Source: Amoeboaphelidium protococcarum X5 (Eukaryota > Fungi > Aphelidiomycota). Taken from it: a stretch of 64,000 nt of DNA. The notes beneath the pieces are model-generated. The model saw only the letters and a list, made by a program, of their open reading frames with translations, did no database searches and was not told where the DNA came from. How positions within the stretch are numbered: the stretch's first letter is position 1; the number at the start of each line of letters is the position of its first letter. Below, one piece after another: positions 11,016 to 41,891 of this stretch. The stretch is from contig JALDTO010000181.1 in NCBI GenBank assembly GCA_023515725.1, forward strand, positions 186,001-250,000, given 5' to 3'. Both the position numbers and the translations under genes were made by a program.

Positions 11016-12281
11016 ATGACCCAAGAGAATAACGACACGTTCTTGTTCACTTCTGAATCTGTCGGTGAGGGCCATCCAGGTAATATACATATTGTTTTTA
11101 GCTTTTTCGTTGCTCACCATCTCATTATTAAATACTCTCGCGTATGAATGAATGTAGATAAGATCTGTGACCAGGTGTCTGACGCCATTTTGGATGCTTG
11201 CCTGAAGCAGGATCCTCTCTCCAAGGTTGCTTGTGAAACCTGTACCAAGACTGGTATGGTCATGGTCCTCGGTGAAATTACCACCAAGGCATCTCTGGAC
11301 TACCAGAAGATCATCCGTGGTGTGATCAGAGACATTGGTTATGACAACTCTGACAAGGGATTCGATTACAAGACCTGTAATGTGCTGGTGGCCATTGAGC
11401 AGCAGTCTCCTGACATTGCTCAAGGTCTGGTGCAAACCTCTACTGCAGTTGAGGATATTGGTGCCGGTGATCAGGGTATCATGTTTGGTTATGCCACTGA
11501 TGAGACTCCTGAGCTTATGCCTGCCACCGTCACCATGGCTCACCGTCTGAACCAGAAGATGACTGAGCTGCGTAAGAATGGCACTCTTGGCTGGCTGCGT
11601 CCTGATAGTAAGACTCAGGTCACCATTGAGTACCGTAATGAGAATGGTGCCATGGTCCCTCTGCGTGTCCACACCGTTGTCATCTCTACTCAGCACGCTC
11701 CAGAGATTGACAATGACTCCATGAAGAAGGCTCTGAAGGAGTAGGTGATCAAGGCTGTTGTGCCTGCCAACATGCTGGATGAGCGCACCATCTATCACTT
11801 GCAGCCTTCCGGAAGATTTGTTATTGGTGGTCCTCAGGGTGATGCTGGTCTGACTGGTCGTAAGATCATTGTTGACACGTACGGTGGTTGGGGCTGTCAC
11901 GGTGGTGGAGCTTTCAGTGGAAAGGATTTCAGTAAGGTGGATCGTTCTGCTGCATACGCTGCCCGCTGGGTTGCCAAGTCACTGGTGAGTGCCAAGTTGG
12001 CTCGCCGTTGTCTGGTGCAGCTGAGTTATGCCATCGGTGTCTCTCACCCACTGAGTATTTTTGTCGATACCTATGGCACTTCTGCCACCAACCCAAAGAC
12101 TGGAAAGACTTACACCAATGGTGAGCTATTGCAGATTATCTAAAACAATTTTGATTTGCGTCCTGGTTTCATCGTTCGTGATCTGGACTTGACTAAGCCT
12201 GTCTATTAGAAGACTGCCAGCTATGGTCATTTTGGTAGAACCGATTTTACTTGGGAACAGCCAAAGCCATTGAAGCTGTGA
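11016..12281 (+). CDS. MAT: S-adenosylmethionine synthetase
   Basis: [13 protein letters not shown]|[52 protein letters not shown]. Intron about 11080-11157; LKE(TAG=Q)VIK. Confidence 0.98.
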
Positions 12282-16218: not shown

Positions 16219-19200
16219 ATGGAGGTGCTTTACACGTCAGATACGCATAAGAAGAACAAAGTATGGCATGATGGAGTAATTAAGGAAGTATAATCTAGCA
16301 ATTCACGGAAGAAAATGTATGAACTGCGTGACAGTGCTGGAGCTGTAGTGGATCGTCACGCTTTGACTTGTGCCATTGGGTAAGCTGTTACAAGTGATCA
16401 AGAGCTGACATTTGGAAGACATCTGGTGATGATCACCTAAATAACCGATTAGAATACCAATGCTGCACAGTAATAAAATTCTTCCTACACCTAGCCACTG
16501 CGTAATAACAAGAAGAAGACTTTCAGAGTACCGCTTTCTCAACGTCCCGTGGTTGAAACGTCAGTCTCGAACGTGTAATCCTCTTAGGTAACTGAAGATA
16601 AGTAAGGAGAGACTTTAAAATGTTTATACACGGATTAAATTCATAAAAAGTAAAAGATTTGGCTGGATGGAACTATAAAATTGAATTAGTCTGTAAAGTC
16701 ACTTAAATTGTTCAGCGAGTCTGGATAATAAATCTCGTCGGTAAAGAACCAATATGTGGTGTCAGATACTGATATTTTCAGCAAGGATTAAGTAGATGGT
16801 GAACTTACGATTGATGGCAAGTATCTGGTCTAATTCGAACGTGCTAATGTCCCCACTTTATCATAACGCGTCAATAAGTTTCATTCAGCCTTCAAGCGGC
16901 CAAAGTTCATGGTACCAAAGTCTACTCAGAATGTCGATCAGAACGTTGAAGCTGTCATAGAGATCGATCTTACCGAAAATGTATAGGAATCGGAATCTCT
17001 TGTGGATCTGAACAATGAAGATGACCGGATATTGAACATCCCAGTAGAGACTCAATAAAGCTCTATCATTAAGGTCGAGCCTTCTAGGCCATCTAAGTCG
17101 AACCTTCGCGCTAAGTTCAAGCCCCCTCTAAAGCAAGCTGGTTCAGTACCTACCACTCCATTGGCCATATCTGTTTATCCATGGAAATAAGCAGCCGTTA
17201 GAACATCTAGGTACAATGGAGCAAAGTTTAAGCGAGAGTACAAAGTCCCTACTCACTTCAAATCCGCCGAGACATATCTTATGACTTTGTTGAATACGCA
17301 ACTGGAATGCTTGTAAATCCAAGTCAATGAGCAGTTTGTCGAGTTGTACAAGGTGCGTTCCACGCTGGCAAAGAAGATGCAATTGAATAGTGCGGACGCT
17401 TGGCGGGCTAAAGGCGTGAAGATGTCTTTTGGCTGTGAATTAGCAGAAGTTTCAGTGTATGATTAACAAAATCAGACTTATTCTCTCACCTTGCCAAAGG
17501 TTGGGGACTTGAAGCTTTACTCAAAAGATGATCTTTGGGTGGTGAGTAAATCTATGTAATTTGAGTAGTCTGAATCAGCTTTATTCCGAGCTAATTGGCA
17601 TGCTCCTCGTAAGTTATCAGGCACAACTGGGACTATGGAATTAAAGCCTCTGGAATCTCAGAGTGTAGGCCGTAAATTCTTCAAAGATTTATTGTCGTCA
17701 GATGCTGGTCCGGATTTAGCGACTGTCAAACGACATCGATCTAAATTGGAAATGTTTGATGAGCGATTTATTAAGTAAAATAGCACTAAATGCCAAAATT
17801 TAGTGGCAGTAAATCTATTTAACGCGTCATCTGAATTAAAAGTGATAGAAAAGCTGAAGGATTTGTAGAAATGCGTTGTGGGTAGTTCGCTGCTGGACTA
17901 TATCTAGTCGTTCCCCCTTTGTCCTTATATTGTGGGAGACATTGCGCAAAGTAAAATTAAATAGGTGGTATCTAATAGTCTTTTCCATCAGTCACATTTA
18001 GAGGAAGCATTGGCCCTTTTAAAGTAGTACCATATGAAATACAAACTTAATGATGACCAGAAGGAGGTCTCAGTTGCATTTACCAAGAACTTGATCTAAT
18101 CTTCACAAGAGGGTCACCATCCAATCACTCTATGTCATGGAGTATTTGGAGCGGGTAAATCGTATCTCCTGGCCGTGCTTGTAATGTTCCTTCATAAATT
18201 TATTGAATTAATTGGACTGGATTCTAAGGACTTTAAAGTATTACTTTCATCGAATACTAATGTTGCTGTTGATAGAGTTCTGGTTGTGCTCAGAGAATTG
18301 GGATTTGAAGAGTTTACTCGAATTGGACCTATTAACAAGGTTGATAAGCGGATTTTGCAATATCGCTTGCAGCAAAAGGCAAGAGATGATGCGAATGACC
18401 AGAATGATGAAGTCAAGGTACTTGCCGCAATGATGGATAACTGTCGCGATGATCGGGAGCGCCAGTATCTAGAGGATGCTCATTATAAATATTCTCAAAA
18501 GCTCAATATAGATCTTCTTAAAGACACCTTTCTGGTTGGCACTACTTGTCTATCTACTTTGAATCCTGTGCTGAGTAGTCCATTGAATAACGGACATTAA
18601 ATCAAGTTTCCTGTGGTGTTTCTGGATGAGTGCAGCTAAATGACTGAGGCTCTAAGTCTTTTGCCATTGGCTTCGTTTGATACTAAATGTGCCCTTCTCA
18701 TTGGCGATCCTTTACAACTACCGCCAACGCTTCCACCAGCTGCTCCGGCTCTTGCTAATGACCGCGATGCGCATGGATCAGAGAGAACGCTGTTTGAACG
18801 TGTCAGAGATATGGGCGTTCCTGCTGTTATGCTTCGTACATAGTACCGTTGTCATCCCGAGATATCGTCTCTATCGAATGAACTCTTTTATGACTCCAAA
18901 CTGGTTAATGGCATCACGGCTGAGCATAGACCGCCTCTGATCAATAGCAATTTCCCTCCCTTAATGATGGTCAACATGCCAGTTGGTAAAGAAGAGCAAA
19001 CGTACTCCGGTAGCTACATCAACTAATCTGAGAGCTAGTGTATATTGAAAATTGTTCGATCTATTTTAATGCAAAAGTAATCCGACGGCGACCGTCTGCG
19101 TGGAAGCCAACTGGGCGTTATATCATTGTACAAGAGCTAATCTGAGCTGTTGTCTTAAATCATAAATGTCGGAGATTGTCAGGAGACTGTTGAAGTCAGC

Positions 19201-20976: not shown

Positions 20977-22999
20977 TATGATGAATATTCTAAAATTAAG
21001 TGTATGAATCAACTGTGAAGATGAAGGGCGCAAATGTAAATTTAAATATGATAGACGATGCCCAGTTGTTGGTTGTGTTAAACAGGAAAGGAAGACGCTC
21101 TCACAATTTATTTTGTTTTAGGAAACCTTGATGGAACGAACTGAGGCCGCCGTGGAATAGTTTACTGTAACTCGTTGAAACTGCCCGAAGAGAGCCAGCC
21201 TCTTTGCTGTTTCAACGTGGAATCTTTTGTGTTTGAGATGATTATGAGACTTGCCTACCGCAGCAGTGAACGAAAAGACTATGATAAAGTCTGACTTTTC
21301 TATTTCATTTCAATAAAATGATGCTTCCACTAATTCTTACTCTCTTTATATACAGTATAAGGCAATCAAAAGCCATGCTTCCCAAAAATTGGGACAAAGA
21401 TGTCAAAAAATGTTCTCCATCACCTTCATCGACCATTTCGCGTACTTGACACCACTATCGACTCCGAAATATTCAGTGCAGCTTCCATATCCCTTTCCAG
21501 AAGAGGAATTTGATGCAATCTCAGAATGACCGCGTCTGGTTACAGCAATGAAACAGCTTATGCCGCCGAGATTTCACGCCGCAGTTAACAACGATATCAA
21601 ACCTCAGCCACGGCTCCACCCTCAACCGTCCACCAACGAATAAACTATTAGGTTACAATATTTCAAGAAATTCAAGCTATGAAACTTAATCAAGTAAAGA
21701 ATATATTTGTAACCATAAAGTCCGATAACTATCAAATCACAATAAGTACCCCTTAGTCTATCATAAACTAATCGACAACCAAACCCACTAGTTTAGTGCG
21801 ACTAGTAACCAGGAACTGTCGATACTCTTTATCGACCAGATCGACCGCTAAAGCCGGTAACGCATTACCACTAGGAAGGTGGATACGTTTCAACGCCTAT
21901 TTCTTCTATATACGCTCCAAGCGCTCTCTCTCTCCTCGTGCTCCGCCCTTTCAGCTGCTGTTAATCGATCAAGGACATCATCTTATTAGTGCAAAGGAGA
22001 CTGAATAGGAGTGGCCGCTTGTGGTCGAGATGAACTCCCCTTTCGGCACTAAACATCGCCGAGAGTAAACTCGTACACGCACTCAAACAGGCACACCAAG
22101 TACCCCACCGCCTTATCCTCCTGGCCGCTCATTCTCACTTTTCTAACGTGATCAGATAGGCGAGATGCAAGCACATCAACGCCATCAAATCTGTCAGAAG
22201 GCACTGAATGCGCCACACTCTGAAGCACATCATCAATTTGCATCGCCTGCACAGCACCAACCACAGCAGCATCAGCACAACTTGGTTATCAAGCACCATC
22301 ACCAGACATTGCAATAATTTTTAAATCACTGTTTTACAATATTTTTACTAACAATAAGGAAGGAATGCAAAGTCTAGGTGAGAATGTAAACAATTATAAA
22401 AGCGATAACCAAAGAATCACCTGAGTATTTCGGCTCAACGCTGTCGGTCTAATTGGGTGATTAAGTTGGTACAGGTGCAGGGATTCTCGATCATCTTGCA
22501 TAAGGACGACAGTATCTAGAGTTTACCGGTAATACGCACAGTAGCTGCTACGAAACCATCCTTTGAATGTATCTGATGAATTACAGTTCGTTTCAGTAAA
22601 ATGTCCGATCACGGAAAAGTGTTTTGGGCACAAAAAATAATGACGAAGTTTTAAGCACGATACTTCCCTACAACAGATAGTATTAGAACTCGTAATGCGA
22701 AGCATACGTGTAATTTGAACAATTATAAGTAACTTATGTGACGTCTTCTTAGATAATGCCGCAAAGTTCTCTATTTCATTCTCCAGTGATGGAAAGTGCC
22801 AATTTCAAAGCCATCGATTTTAGATTTAAGTAATCAAGTGATGGATTGTAGTAATAAGAATACTTTTCCTATATATTATGTAGTTTTTGACTTTAGAAAT
22901 TTTCAAACAGTGCCAAGTAATGAAATTCAATTTCATCGTTACTAAAAGCGGCTCTTACAGCGGCTAGCAAACTCCAATTACTGACTTGTTGAAAAGGCC

Positions 23000-23007
23000 T
23001 ATAAAAG
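23000..23007 (+). promoter_or_regulatory. Candidate TATA box of the Fanzor gene
   Basis: TATAAAAG lies 70 nt upstream of ATG 23070 and is followed by a pyrimidine-rich tract. Confidence 0.45.
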
Positions 23008-23069
23008 CGCCAGACAGTTCACTATTTCTTCTTCCTCTTTCTTATCTAACTTCTCATAGATAAGAAGAT

Positions 23070-25387
23070 ATGGCAAAGAAAGTAATACGTAAATGCAAAC
23101 TAAATACTGTCTTGAATGTTAGCGATAGTGATAAAGAGAGATTGATACCACAGATTCGACTGAGCTCAGTGCACCTCACCTTTGCATTCCGTCTGATCTA
23201 TCTCAGTCTTAATGTATGGAATGAAGCCGGCAAGGCACTACCTGAGCTATCTCATTAGCAGTATTTCGCGTCAATGCTGGAGTATCTCTGCAACTCTGCG
23301 TTTCATCGTGACAATGAACACACACGAATGCTGGCTGAAACTATCGCTCCTGAAGTGCGATAGAGATTGAGGCACGAAAGCCTGATTGGTCCAAATCCTA
23401 ACCTGTACGTGTTTCAAGCGCGTAAGATTATTTAAGCTATCACCTGGCATCTGACTGAAACTATATGGGTCTACTAGAAGAAGGTGATTAAAGCTTAAAT
23501 GGAGGCCTTTAATGTAAAGCCCGAAGGCTTACCGTGTTTCTATAGCTGCTCAACTCTTTGCTGACTGAAGAAGCTGTTAACACGATGGAACACTTTGGGG
23601 GCGAGTACTTGGAGATTAATCCCGCGACTCAGATACATTTGCCTCCTGATTACGATGCTGGTGAAGATGAGGAGACAATTGCGCAATAAGATGCTGCTAT
23701 TAAGGACGAGTTTCTGCAATTGTTATAAGTTGAAGAAGTTCGGCACTTGGTCTCAATGCATCGTCACCATTTATTGGATATTGTCACCACTTCTTTTAAA
23801 GACAGAGCTCCAAGAAGGCGATACAGTAAAAGAAAAGCATAATCTCCTAGTCAGCTGCATGGACTCATCGGTTTCAAGCGATAGAAATCGGGTAAGCTGA
23901 AGTAGCGTGATACCCATCACACATACTGTACATGCCATCAAGAGCACCATGCATTTCAGAATCAGGAGGGCTAGAAAGTTTTGGTCCAATATCTGATGTA
24001 TTTGCGTTAAACTCTCAAGGAGCTAGGCTTGCCATCATTCAAGGTTTTCCCTACTGGTACCGATGTTCCGCGCCACATCTGCTTTGACAATATAGTTTTG
24101 GCTCAGCGGGGGTTTTAACAGTATCGCCTGGGCAATCAGTTGGGGGAGGAGTCGGAAGAGGAGGAGGATCAACGGTAATGTATCCTAAGGCTTAAAGTTT
24201 TGAGTCTTTAACAGCGGATGGCTAAATCTAAAAACGTCAGTGTCAGTATCACGTCTGATGGTTTTGCGTGCTCCGTGTCTGTTTCAGATTAAGGTGGGAA
24301 AGCGTATGCAAATGAAGCTTCAGACCTGCAGAGAAAAGCACGAAACATTGACGTGTCTCAAGTAATTGTTGGGGCTTTTGCTTTGGAAAACTGTCGGAAT
24401 CTCCAACAAAGATTAGATGGCTCTCGATTGATTGGCGTTGACCCTGGTAAGAAGAACGTACTGGTGTGGGGCGACGACGCGGACGTCGATGGTGCAATTA
24501 CGCTAAAAGAAGCCAAGAAGGAGCTAAAAGAAACGGGCCACATATCTGCTGGATACTGGTAACGTCTTGCATTGACTACAGAGTCTGAAGCCCATCTGTT
24601 GCATATCAAACCAACTGAAATCACGCTGATGGAGTAATATATGGCCTAATCAAACACTTGCCAGTAGTATCTCGATGTTTACATCAGATATTTTGAGGAC
24701 GTCTAGGCCTTCTACTCAAGATCATTCCATCGTAATTGGAGATTCCGACGATTTTGCGCGACCAAGTCTGCGTTTGGTAAAGTCATCAACATGATGTATG
24801 TCAGACCAAAGCCACCAGTGCCTAAAATCAACGATCGGCGCCGAGGTAAAGCTGCAAAGAAGAGGAAACGCGAACTGCGTAAATCTAATGGCAAGTTTTC
24901 ACCTCCAGATAAGCCTCCGGTAATTGCGCTTGGTGACGCTGGTGTGAAGCACGTGCGTGGTAATCCTCCTGTTCCGGTGAGAAAATTCGCGTTTGAATTC
25001 AGTCGTCGGGCATTGGTAGTTATAACGCCGGAGTTCCACACTAGCAAGCAGCACTCATTATGTCATGCAGATCTTCAATGGGAGCATGAAGTGGTGATGA
25101 GGTGCCGACACAAGAAGGCAAAGAAGATACTGCCTGGTCGTCGCCGGGCTTAAACTGTCTGCATCAAAGCTGATGGTCCAGAAATCCTATCGCACGAATG
25201 TCCTGATCGTTTTAACCGAAGAGTCCAATCAAGATTTGGAGTTTGCCCAAACTGCCAAAACACTGGATGTGACGTCTTTGTAGATCGGGACGTTAATGCT
25301 TACAGGAGTATGGCTCAAATAGTCCGCCATTACGCGATGCATGGTAGCAGACCTTAATGGAATTGCCGCGCCGAAAGGCGCGCCTGA
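23070..25387 (+). CDS. Fanzor1-like (TnpB-family) RNA-guided endonuclease, about 760-770 aa; one frame break near 23460-23565 (intron or 1-nt deletion)
   Basis: Code-6 translation gives PSFKVFP..PRHICFD, SITSDGFACSV, RuvC-I LIGVDPGKKN (D at 24440), FYS..HRNWRFRRF, IALGDA..GNPPVP, RuvC-II PEFHTSKQHSLC (E at 25031), CPNC, RuvC-III VDRDVNA (D at 25289) and terminal GSRP. Confidence 0.9.
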
Positions 25388-25876
25388 TATATACAGTAAT
25401 GTTTGTCGGACAAACCGATGAAATAGACTGTATTCCACTGAAATGCTTGTTGAGAAAAAGTAGAAATTGTGACAGTTTCATGACACACCGCGCCGAGGTC
25501 TGAACTGGTTCTGACCTGTTAGTGATTGAATCATTGTAGTTATAAAAACGATGTAAACTGGCGTGTTTCTTCTGACAAAAGGTGAAGAGTTTGAGATTAT
25601 TGTTGTGAAATATGAGCGAGTGATTACTACAACATTGTATCTACATGCTTGGGTTGTCTTGGATGCTTTTTTTATTACACTTTGCAGAAACTCCGATGCT
25701 CTCATCAACTCTCCGCCGGGATATGAAGCGCGAAATCGTTCAGTGTTGCAAATATAGAATCTCTAGCTTAGTACGGTGTATGCAATTATAAACCAGGAAA
25801 TTTCATCATCGCACACGTTTCCTGTCTCTGTGCTCCGCGTTTAGTCCTGATCGCGGCACAAGTTATAGAGATTTAG
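25365..25876 (+). ncRNA. Candidate Fanzor omegaRNA region / right end of the element
   Basis: Non-coding gap between the Fanzor stop and the convergent Aladin gene. Visible stems: CGCGCC-GAAA-GGCGCG (25367-25382); ATACAGT/ACTGTAT enclosing GTTTGT/ACAAAC (25391-25433); AATCTCTA/TAGAGATT enclosing two hairpins (25758-25873). Confidence 0.5.
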
Positions 25877-31200: not shown

Positions 31201-32577
31201 AAGAGAGATTCTTAAATCTTGCTGATGAATTTCCTACAGAAGGTGCTCTTCAACGACAGAATGACTCCAATGGAGTTTGACTTGTTTACCAAAATGACTG
31301 CAGTTACCAGCTCTGTCTATTAGGATATTCCATTGAATCATTTGGATGTAAAGATCACGCCTGACATGTATGAATTGGTGCTAATGGTTGATGCTGACAC
31401 TAAAGTATTTCCTGATGCTCTCACTCCAATGTCGTATGCCATGGCCAATGATCCTAAAATTATTGGTTTGTGTGGTGAGACGCAGATTGCGAACAAGGGC
31501 GAAAGTTGGGTGACCGCTATCCAGGTGTTTGAATATTATCTCGCTCACTTTCTATCCAAGTCCTTTGAGTCTGTATTTGGTAGTTGTACATGTCTGCCTG
31601 GATGCTTCTCTATGTATCGTGTTCGAGCTCCGAAAGGCGAGAGTGATGCCAAATCTGGTCTTCAACATTTCGTCCCTATCCTTGCGAATCCTGACATTGT
31701 TGAGGCTTACTCTGAAAATGTGGTTGAGACTTTGCACGCTAAGAATCTACTTCTACTTGGTGAGGATCGTTACCTGACTACTCTGATGTTGAAGACTTTC
31801 CCCAAGAGGAAGTTGGTATTTGTTCCAAGAGCCAAATGTAAGACTGAAGTGCCAAGTACGTTCAAAGTTCTCTTGTCTCAGCGCAGGCGTTGGATCAACT
31901 CCACAGTTCATAATCTACTCGAGCTGGTCTTGGTACGAGATTTGTGTGGTATTTTCTGCTTCTCAATGCAGTTTGTCATTTTTATGGAACTCATTGGTAC
32001 TGCCGTATTGCCTGCAGCTATTTGTTTTACCATCTACCTGCTGATCATCTCGTTCTTTGTCACTCCACCGCCAATCATTCCTCTGGCTCTGTTGGCTGCA
32101 ATTTTGGGTTCTCCCGCTCTTTTGATCGTGTTCACTTCTACGAAGAGATACAGTTTTCTGCTGTGGATGATCATCTATCTGTTCAGTCTACCCATCTGGA
32201 ACTTCGTGTTGCCCGCATATGCGTACATGCATTTTGATGACTTTACATGGGGTCAGACGCGTCAACTCAAAGGCGGCGATGCTAATCACGACTCTGCTGA
32301 GGGTGAATTCGATCCATCCAAGATTGTTATGAAGAAATGGTCTGAATGGGAGCGCGAGCGGTATCAGCAAGAAACTCTGCAAGGTCTCGCTGCTGGTGGA
32401 AAGAGCAGGACGGTGAGCGAGAATTAGAGAAAGTCGCGTTTCAAGAGTTTCATCGCGAGTGAAGTGCCGCTTGAAGAAAGTGATGAGACTGATATGGATA
32501 ACACTGGCGACACTGATTCCATTGATGACTACTCTAGGAGCTGGAATCCTGAAGAATTCATTGCTAAATTGAGATGA
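28285..32577 (+). CDS. Chitin synthase, division 2 (class IV/Chs3-like), about 1430 aa, intronless
   Basis: [33 protein letters not shown] (Q=TAA), [54 protein letters not shown]. Confidence 0.96.
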
Positions 32578-40252: not shown

Positions 40253-41891
40253 ATGGTGTTCTTGTCCAAGCTTATCAGAGGAGAGTAAAGTCAGCTGAGT
40301 CCTAATGATTAGGATTTCATTAATACTACAGTGTATGGGTCTAGATTTGCTGTGAGCGATGTGCCCAAGTATGAGATGCCGGCCACGGAAATGCCAGCGA
40401 ACGTTGCATATAAGCTGATCAAGGATGAGTTGGCTTTGGATGGTAATCCTCTATTAAATCTCGCCTCATTTGTCACCACTTATATGGAAGAGGAAGCTGA
40501 GATGCTGATGACTGAGAATCTAAGCAAGAATTTTATCGATTTCGAAGAGTACCCAGAGACGGCTGATATTCACAGTCGCTGTGTCAACATTGTGGCCAAT
40601 TTGTTCAATGCACCGATCGACACGGCTGAAGGGCATGAGGCTGTAGGTACCAGCACTATTGGTAGTTCTGAGGCTCTGATGTTAAGTGTTCTAGCATTGA
40701 AACGTCGCTGGCAGCAGAGACAAGAGAAGCTGGGTAAAAGTAAAGATAAGCCGAATATGATCATGGGCGCTAATGTTCAGGTTTGTGTTGAGAAGGCTTG
40801 CCGCTACTTTGAGATTGAGGCGCGTCAAGTTCCATGTGAAGAAGGTCAGTTATGCTTAGATCCTCACAAGGCTATCCAGTTAGTCGATGAGAACACTATT
40901 GCTGTTGTTGTGATTCTGGGATCCACCTACACTGGCCATTTTGAGGATGTCAAATTGATGGATAAACTGTTGTAGGAAAAGGCTTAGAAGACTGGTTATG
41001 CAGTTCCCATTCACGTAGATGCTGCTAGTGGTGGATTTGTTGCACCTTTCACCAATCCTGATTTAGAGTGGGACTTTCGCGTCAAATCTGTAGTGTCTAT
41101 TAACGTTTCCGGTCACAAATATGGGTAAATCTATTCTATTTTATATATGATATTTTAGTATACATTTATATCGTGTGTAGGTTAGCTTATCCTGGAGTCG
41201 GATGGTGTATTTGGAGAAGTAAAGAGTATCTGCCGGAAGATTTGGTCTTCCACATCAATTACCTTGGTGCTGATTAGGCGTCGTTCACTCTAAACTTTTC
41301 AAAGAGTGCCTCCAATGTCATTAGTCAGTACTACACTTTCATTAGATACGGTCGCGAGGGGTACAAGTTGATTTTAAATAATTTGGTTATTGTCGCTGAT
41401 CACTTGGCCAAATGCTTAGTAGATATGGGAATATTTGAGATTATGTCTCCAGAGAAATGTAAAGGTTTGCCTCTAGTTGCCTGGAGAATCCGTCCTGATG
41501 TAATTAAGCACTGGAATGAATTTGATCTGGCTGCCAAGTTGCGCGAACACTCTTGGATCATTCCAGCGTATACCATGTGCGATAATGTGAAGCATATTAA
41601 GTTGTGCAGAGTTGTTGTGCGTGAAGATTTCACGATGAGTCGCTGTCACATCCTGGTTAAGCATATTAACATGTGCGTCAAATAGCTGGTAAGATTATTA
41701 TCGGTTCCAACATCTGTTTGTCACTATTAATGTTCACATTTGTATTTTTTGTGTAGGATGAGACCAATAAGGAGGCTCTAGATGCAGTACAGCGTAAAAT
41801 TGCAAATAAATGGAAGTTCAATGCCAGTTCTTGGCGTCATAAAGATGTAAAAGCTGTGGTGGACGTTGATGGTGGATCTTCAGTATGTTGA
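40253..41891 (+). CDS. GAD1: Glutamate decarboxylase (PLP-dependent)
   Basis: [53 protein letters not shown]. Introns 41125-41180 and about 41689-41756. Confidence 0.96.

Follow-up and report, generated by a model that had tools for sequence, protein, structure and literature searches.

Location, Host and Genetic Code

The locus described here occupies positions 22584-25430 of the window, the 64,000-nucleotide stretch of DNA from the alga-eating protist Amoeboaphelidium protococcarum that was analysed, and consists of a transposon-like element with one gene, whose product is assigned below to the Fanzor1 proteins, eukaryotic relatives of Cas12 that cut DNA under RNA guidance. We refer to it as the focal copy. 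The window also carries ordinary host genes, among them an S-adenosylmethionine synthetase (11148-11741), a piece of an AAA_11 helicase (18100-18597), a chitin synthase (31324-32424) and a pyridoxal-dependent decarboxylase (40313-40972); in the synthetase ORF, TAR triplets make up 3 of the 19 Gln codons. The best protein matches to the Fanzor gene are "hypothetical proteins" of A. protococcarum itself (locus prefix MIR68), identifying this organism as the host. Since its genome is duplicated (PMC10608142), a diverged second, homeologous locus could be used for comparison.

The earlier note read TAA and TAG as Gln, and this holds up well. Long ORFs run across the window under genetic code 6 and are broken by the standard code, UAR as Gln has been published for A. 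protococcarum (PMC5304391), and TAR and CAR codons are exchanged at 11 aligned positions between Fanzor subfamilies 1 and 2 (described below). TAR accounts for 48-49% of Gln codons in the Fanzor gene, as against 55% in the long host ORFs of the window; translation of the gene in code 6 is of long standing. It had also been expected that standard-code searches would miss the gene, which is true of six-frame ORF calling, where the longest catalytic piece is 148 aa, but not of protein databases. GenBank holds code-6 translations of the focal copy (KAI3636063.1, 753 aa, modelled with a 56-nt intron around a frame break) and of intact sister copies, including KAI3631682.1 (771 aa). As these are deposited as "hypothetical", the gene lacks a name, yet it is not hidden.

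Reading Frame of the Focal Copy

The sequence motifs first noticed at this locus had been located correctly, and all fall in a single code-6 frame at 23459-25384: GVDPG with its Asp at 24440-24442, EFHTSK with its Glu at 25031-25033, HSLC at 25052-25063, CPNC at 25244-25255 and DRDVNA with its second Asp at 25289-25291. The HSLC/CPNC pair had been called a zinc ribbon, and although its position is right, the first zinc ligand is a His instead of a Cys. GSRP, taken at first for the terminus, is followed under code 6 by ten further residues and then by TGA at 25385-25387.

The idea that the pieces join into one protein did not survive closer inspection. The ATG at 23070 and the catalytic half are in different frames, which change over somewhere from 23459 to 23561, and the focal copy is made up of two overlapping code-6 ORFs, 22842-23561 and 23459-25384. 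In an alignment of 11 copies, one A is missing at about 23516 relative to nine sister copies, which marks a one-base deletion in an A run (23515-23520) beside a private substitution at 23520. The 5′ part of the gene (start of WED/REC) extends on the forward strand from 23070 to 23515, where residues 1-157 of the intact sister P0001 match in frame 3 by tblastn, and the 3′ part (REC, RuvC and the zinc/TNB region) from 23516 to 25387, covered by the longer ORF and by the profile and fold matches of the intact sister. The copy alignment also revealed a private 5-base insertion at a TA, giving TA-CTG-TA (23924-23928), followed about 15 bases on by a 2-base deletion (23924-23945 in all); taken together, these two changes restore the frame. 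TA-CTG-TA has the shape of a Tc1/mariner excision footprint, as in Tc1-type repair products.

As assembled, the focal copy makes no full-length protein, and the missing base is either real or an assembly error. Being frameshifted, the assembled focal copy cannot be the active nuclease that was proposed, but the proposal may hold for eight intact sisters. Another reading, which seems to us doubtful, takes the focal copy itself as intact and active, the frameshift being due to faulty assembly or bypassed by splicing. The missing base does fall in an A run, none of the private differences of the focal copy are present in the read contigs, and the downstream +5/-2 pair that restores the frame suggests selection on the ORF in this very copy. 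However, the read contigs collapse repeats, drop rare variants and show the majority form only, so that the absence of private variants from them is uninformative, and the focal copy is a real, older copy because it branches outside the clade of young copies, from which it differs by 1.2-1.6%, and because the subfamily-2 base is retained at 11 of its 30 private substitutions. As for splicing, GenBank models a 56-nt GT-AG intron at 23422-23477, but the ends of this intron are identical in the intact sisters, where its removal would break the frame, and 33 alternative GT-AG pairs would "repair" the frame equally well. We rejected the intron as the cause of the frame break; it is likely an artefact of the gene predictor.

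Identification of the Protein as Fanzor1

Neither the single full sequence nor its stop-free pieces gave a useful match in PDB or Pfam, and the identification came solely via profile, language-model search and fold. Several relatives match PF07282 above the cut-off, and the C-terminal piece was placed with TNB-bearing clusters at 0.95 in the language-model search. Using a profile of 19 relatives, the top PDB matches were PpFz1, SpuFz1 and GtFz1 (E 2e-14 to 7e-8), with TranC, Fanzor2 (E 0.033) and TnpB (E 0.7) far lower. An AlphaFold model of an intact sister (pLDDT 77.7, pTM 0.74) again had PpFz1, SpuFz1 and GtFz1 as its best Foldseek matches (E 1e-15 to 1e-10), and with VIA these three aligned end to end over about 470-550 residues at Z 15-19, compared with 8.5 for Fanzor2 and 9.0 for TnpB. 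Profile and fold are thus closer to Fanzor1 than to Fanzor2 or TnpB, and the REC region is enlarged. The Fanzor1 identity given in the earlier note is borne out by these comparisons, and from sequence profiles and the predicted structure we consider membership of the family well supported. The nearest relatives outside the species are metagenomic, Radiomyces and Amoeboradix proteins at 20-30%.

The catalytic residues D457, E654 and D740 (numbering of the intact protein) lie in the model at the end of a strand (453-458), behind the final strand that precedes the zinc region and at the start of a helix (739-757), and the profile aligns D457 with the DP motif of SpuFz1 and PpFz1 and also places E654. 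Such RuvC placement has been described for Fanzor (PMC11423790), and by secondary-structure context and profile alignment the D-E-D residues appear to occupy the places canonical for Fanzor1. The family motif published in 2013, D-X(125,275)-[TS]-[TS]-X-X-[C4 zinc finger]-X(5,50)-RD (PMC3627910), is found here as D457-X199-T657-S658-K-Q-zinc finger-X10-R739-D740. In Fanzors the catalytic Glu stands six residues before the zinc finger (PMC13565253), and here E654 is followed by six residues and then H661. The zinc ligands are H661, C664, C725 and C728, the first being a deviation from C4; the related family B (see below) has Cys at this place. The zinc/TNB region as a whole (HxxC...CxxC, 25052-25255) includes an insert of about 50 aa with further conserved Cys and His, seen in the sequence and in its relatives. 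Within this insert (25064-25243) a CxH...C...C pattern is shared with the Radiomyces and metagenomic relatives and is a possible second metal site. A basic stretch at 24836-24900 resembles a nuclear localisation signal.

The Transposon and its Copies

Homology among ten full-length copies, 98-99% identical, ends sharply at common points, which define a TIR transposon of 2,847 bp in the focal copy and 2,845 bp in its sisters, with the Fanzor as its sole gene. While the gene had been recognised at the outset, the ends of the element, its target-site duplication, its insertion motif and its family of copies had gone unmentioned. The left terminal inverted repeat (22584-22608) is of the Tc1 type and starts CAGT, and the right one lies in the opposite orientation at 25406-25430. 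They match each other imperfectly (16/25), while each end is 17-21/25 like the TIRs of Tc1 elements in the same genome; the left TIR is identical to those of same-genome DD34E Tc1 elements at 21/25 and 20/25 positions and to the pogo ends of family B at 10-13/25. TA stands on both sides of every recent copy. Its right copy, at 25431-25432 in the window, follows all subfamily-1 copies, and the diverged homeologous site on C137 is empty and has a single TA. Both junctions of the focal insertion are present in the read contigs with 0 differences, and contig depth, a rough guide only, is in the element about 10x that of its flanks. With its TIRs and TA duplication, the element has the hallmarks of a non-autonomous member of the Tc1/mariner class.

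A DNA search of the genome found 12 recent copies, ten of them full-length and two disrupted by an insertion or an internal duplication. We call these copies and their relatives family A, the focal-copy group being subfamily 1; subfamily 2 has 80-86% DNA identity to it. A continuous ORF of 771 aa with 23-24 TAR codons is present in eight copies, and one subfamily-2 copy has 772 aa; overall, these genes contain 23-25 TAR codons. Nine young copies are 0-1% apart, two of them identical, and dN/dS between the subfamilies is 0.16; this divergence and ratio support a family that was recently active. In the second sequenced strain it is subfamily 2 that has expanded, with at least 5 full-length copies and one insertion shared with the focal strain. 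The disruptions seen in sister copies include a 512-bp insertion (L013:3055-3566), an internal duplication of about 890 bp (L011) and insertions of 160-290 bp (L018/L020). Element fragments, without flanks, also occur at low depth in the runs X5 and X7, whose labels name two other organisms; they may stem from co-culture, from contamination or from other strains.

No transposase was found inside the element, nor a remnant of one in the 486 bp preceding the ATG. Ghost loci of family A were likewise not found, as all 14 of 14 right-end matches belong to gene-bearing copies. The genome has 17 DDE_3 matches, but no intact Tc1 transposase with family-A-like ends was among the loci examined. We infer the mobilising enzyme, since both Tc1 elements with the nearest ends are broken, one frameshifted (L036) and one split (L031/L033). 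The latter is a DD34E element in two halves of swapped order, 6.4 kb apart (L031:7094-7524 (-) and L033:1415-2180 (-)), each with an identical 33-bp TIR, and between them lies a tandem array (L032:566-2403) whose repeat unit is about 176 bp long.

Related Families and Ghost Elements

Two sister families were studied using sequences from the public assembly of the other strain, while further Fanzor families in the focal assembly are represented by their coordinates. The family-B element (L050-L052) measures 4.55 kb and has, upstream of the Fanzor, a pogo-type DDE_1 ORF of 391 aa. Its ends, CTGTA...TACAG, are unlike those of family A, it is flanked by a TA duplication, and its Fanzor of 759 aa has 42% identity to that of family A. 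The same gene order is found in the focal genome on C207 (G000:C207:293363-297209), where family B is also located at C249:19-2334, and from its sequence family B is apparently an autonomous pogo-Fanzor1 element. In the other strain, two family-B copies have common flanks and directly follow a tRNA-like sequence. Family C (L053, L054; G000:C98:1401590-1404008, C142:302898-305314) is an element of about 3.3 kb whose Fanzor (802 aa) is about 40% identical to that of family A; a hairpin is present at its left end, where no clear TIR is seen. Both subfamilies of family A retain the D-E-D residues, and families B and C likewise retain the two Asp motifs.

A ghost element of about 465 bp without an ORF (L031:6633-7094 (-) = G000:C98:184632-185093) occurs in at least 9 copies at 86-95%. 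It comprises the last 40 or so codons of a family-B-like Fanzor and an omegaRNA-like end, and at this locus it is inserted at a TA in a Tc1 transposase gene. We had considered the Tc1 half in L031 as the remnant of an autonomous Tc1-Fanzor, and rejected this on finding that its omegaRNA-like end belongs to the separate ghost inserted in that Tc1.

Insertion Motif and Predicted TAM

The focal copy is preceded by ATTA at 22580-22583, and the closing TA of this motif is the left duplication copy. In the two strains, 17 of 19 independent family-A left flanks have ATTA and the other 2 have GTTA, and for one of the GTTA insertions the orthologous insertion in the other strain follows ATTA. The motif is mirrored at 0 of 18 right sides, and ATTA is found at 0 of 16 Fanzor-less Tc1 ends, a set that mixes several families. 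The background has ATTA at 9.6% of TA sites, and the ATTA statistics give a Fisher p of ~1e-8. Spu-1 likewise inserts at CA+TA, and the measured TAM of its SpuFz1 is CATA (PMC10432273). From this parallel and the one-sidedness of the flanks, we predict ATTA as the TAM of the family-A Fanzor1. The motif is strict in the youngest copies, which says that the bias would arise at or very soon after integration. Family B also has ATTA on the left, at both of its 2 independent sites. In this small sample, related Fanzor-omegaRNA modules appear to ride two ITm families and to share the ATTA motif.

Predicted OmegaRNA

The last 90 or so bases of the element plus the TA (25346-25432, forward strand, with a provisional 5′ bound) are predicted to form an omegaRNA-like scaffold with a fold z of about -4, made up of a GNRA hairpin over the last codons of the gene (25368-25381) and a long stem that uses the right TIR and is closed by the TA duplication (25392-25432). 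Fanzor1 scaffolds that include a duplication have been described (PMC10711439, PMC13565253). Both helices are kept in families B and C, and with anchors chosen from the sequence there are changes on both sides at four pair positions across families A, B and C, three in the terminal stem and one in the hairpin. A formal covariation count on families A and B alone was weak, with one covarying pair and 9/500 shuffles. An RNA model built from families A and B without C finds family C at E 4e-7, and has 29 sites in the focal genome. No match to the right-end RNA was found in Rfam. By fold and covariation, we predict that the family-A right end is an omegaRNA-like scaffold. Another omegaRNA candidate, near 25758-25876, was rejected as it lies outside the element end common to all copies.

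By analogy with characterised Fanzor1 (PMC10432273, PMC10711439, PMC13565253), the guide would be the host flank at 25433-25450, which differs per copy. For the predicted guide of the focal copy, the one guide tested, ATTA followed by a 16/17 match (mismatch at position 11) occurs at L031:4863-4882 (-) = G000:C98:182862-182881, within a host ORF of 2,095 aa, and at the matching site C142:79963-79982; about 0.016 such sites are expected by chance. This may be a self-target.

Proposed Mechanism

We consider it probable that family A is a Fanzor1 OMEGA module on a non-autonomous Tc1/mariner-type transposon, which combines cut-and-paste transposition in trans with RNP cutting of element-free alleles. 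A DD34E Tc1 transposase acting in trans would insert the element by cut-and-paste at the TA within ATTA sites. Transcription through the right end would then give rise to an omegaRNA with a scaffold of about 85 nt, including the duplicated UA, and 15-20 nt of host flank as the guide. With this RNA, the Fanzor RNP would cut element-free alleles, recognising ATTA and then the match to the guide. Repair that uses the occupied allele as its template would copy the element back, restoring or spreading it; such restorative homing has been shown for TnpB and proposed for Fanzor. The occupied site would be spared because CTGTA, not ATTA, precedes the guide match there. The focal copy keeps an unchanged right end and could lend its guide to Fanzor made by the eight intact sister copies.

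Support for this explanation comes from the copies and their ends, the intact ORFs, profile and fold, the ATTA statistics, the Tc1-like TIRs, the fold and covariation of the RNA and the likeness to Spu-1. Against it, both Tc1 elements with the nearest ends among the loci examined are broken, excision footprints of the Tc1 type usually would destroy ATTA plus the guide, so that the real substrate may be the pre-insertion allele only, and the first zinc ligand is a His. We found no experimental demonstration, in the literature consulted, of homing by a Fanzor on a DDE transposon.

The insertion motif raises the possibility that it is the Fanzor RNP, not the transposase, that sets site and orientation, by binding TAM DNA and recruiting or orienting a DDE transposase, since the same one-sided ATTA is seen on Tc1-type and pogo-type carriers. 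That the youngest copies are all at ATTA is hard to explain by retention alone, the TA used by the transposase is symmetric but the motif lies on one side, ATTA is absent from Fanzor-less Tc1 ends, and family B is also at ATTA with a DDE_1 transposase and different ends. The family-B sites are only two, though, the Fanzor-less comparison set is a mixture, and the 465-bp ghost copy in L031 follows CCTA. Asymmetric TIRs could also orient a transposase with an ATTA preference of its own, to which the Fanzor adapted as TnpB did to TnpA. On balance we think this unlikely, but if true it would mean TAM-directed transposition by a eukaryotic DDE transposase. More improbable still is a reading in which the protein is no nuclease serving the transposon but binds under RNA guidance, being either cleavage-dead or domesticated (as a regulator, for example). 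HxxC in place of CxxC and the long inserts would fit such a protein, as would the persistence of a near-perfect ATTA-plus-guide site in a host gene and its homeolog. The conservation of D-E-D across subfamilies, and of the two Asp motifs beyond them, argues against it, as does the location of the gene in an element that is mobile, has multiplied recently and has its own guide in each copy. Family A as a probable RNP-homing module on a Tc1-type carrier is the reading we keep.

Significance and Comparison with Known Systems

Identification of the gene alone is a modest result, because Fanzor1 on mariner-type ends has been known since 2013 and thousands of Fanzors are catalogued. The value lies in the complete set: a family that has multiplied recently, with eight genes intact, its ends exactly placed, the predicted TAM ATTA and a putative scaffold with covariation support, next to a sister family in which a pogo transposase, apparently intact, still accompanies the Fanzor. 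What Fanzors do on DDE transposons is described as unknown (PMC10432273, PMC13565253), one reason being that no transposase is known for Spu-1. Family B would have Fanzor, omegaRNA and transposase in one element, each of them removable, and could be used to ask whether the Fanzor restores, targets or does neither. The family-A Fanzor is also a candidate editor with an AT-rich predicted TAM, and is an example of a mobile gene bound to the code of its host, as about half of its Gln codons are stops elsewhere.

In the literature consulted, we found nothing naming both "Fanzor" and "Amoeboaphelidium". In the parts of the Saito 2023 table and the Yoon 2023 files that we saw, there was no A. protococcarum entry; the portion of the Saito table does contain Fanzor candidates from Amoeboaphelidium occidentale (KAI3658238.1, KAI3657820.1), a different species of the same nominal genus.

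Among described elements, PGv-1, PUl-1 and PUl-4 (PMC3627910) are similar in being Fanzor-only or Fanzor-plus-transposase elements with mariner-type TIRs and TA duplications. Unlike these, the related Fanzors of A. protococcarum (86%, 42% and 40% identity) are found on both Tc1-type and pogo-type ends, with matching changes in the terminal RNA stem. PpFz1 of Parasitella parasitica (9CF0) and GtFz1 of Guillardia theta (9CER) resemble the family-A protein in profile (E 2e-14 and 7e-8), in structure (Z 18.5 and 15.0) and in RuvC order, but share 10-14% identity with it, and their measured TAMs are ATN and TTAA. GtFz1 has an Asn at the third RuvC site where family A has an Asp.

The closest comparison is with Spu-1 and its protein SpuFz1 from Spizellomyces punctatus (PDB 8GKH; PMC3627910, PMC10432273), which is the best structural match of the family-A model (Z 17-19). 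The proteins differ in length (771 aa in family A, 633 in SpuFz1), have about 14% identity, and have different TAMs, ATTA as predicted for family A and CATA for SpuFz1. The family-A protein is written in code 6 with 23-25 TAR codons, and has the HxxC first zinc pair and the zinc-region insert, which SpuFz1 does not. Family A also differs from Spu-1 in that its predicted scaffold overlaps the last codons, in that no ghost loci of it were found and in having related Tc1 transposases in the genome. With that said, both elements have a single Fanzor1 ORF, inverted ends of about 30 bp, a TA duplication and no internal transposase, both have two conserved bases 5′ of the TA (CA in Spu-1, AT in family A), and both have a short omegaRNA at the right end, predicted in the case of family A. 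In its plan, family A is close to Spu-1.
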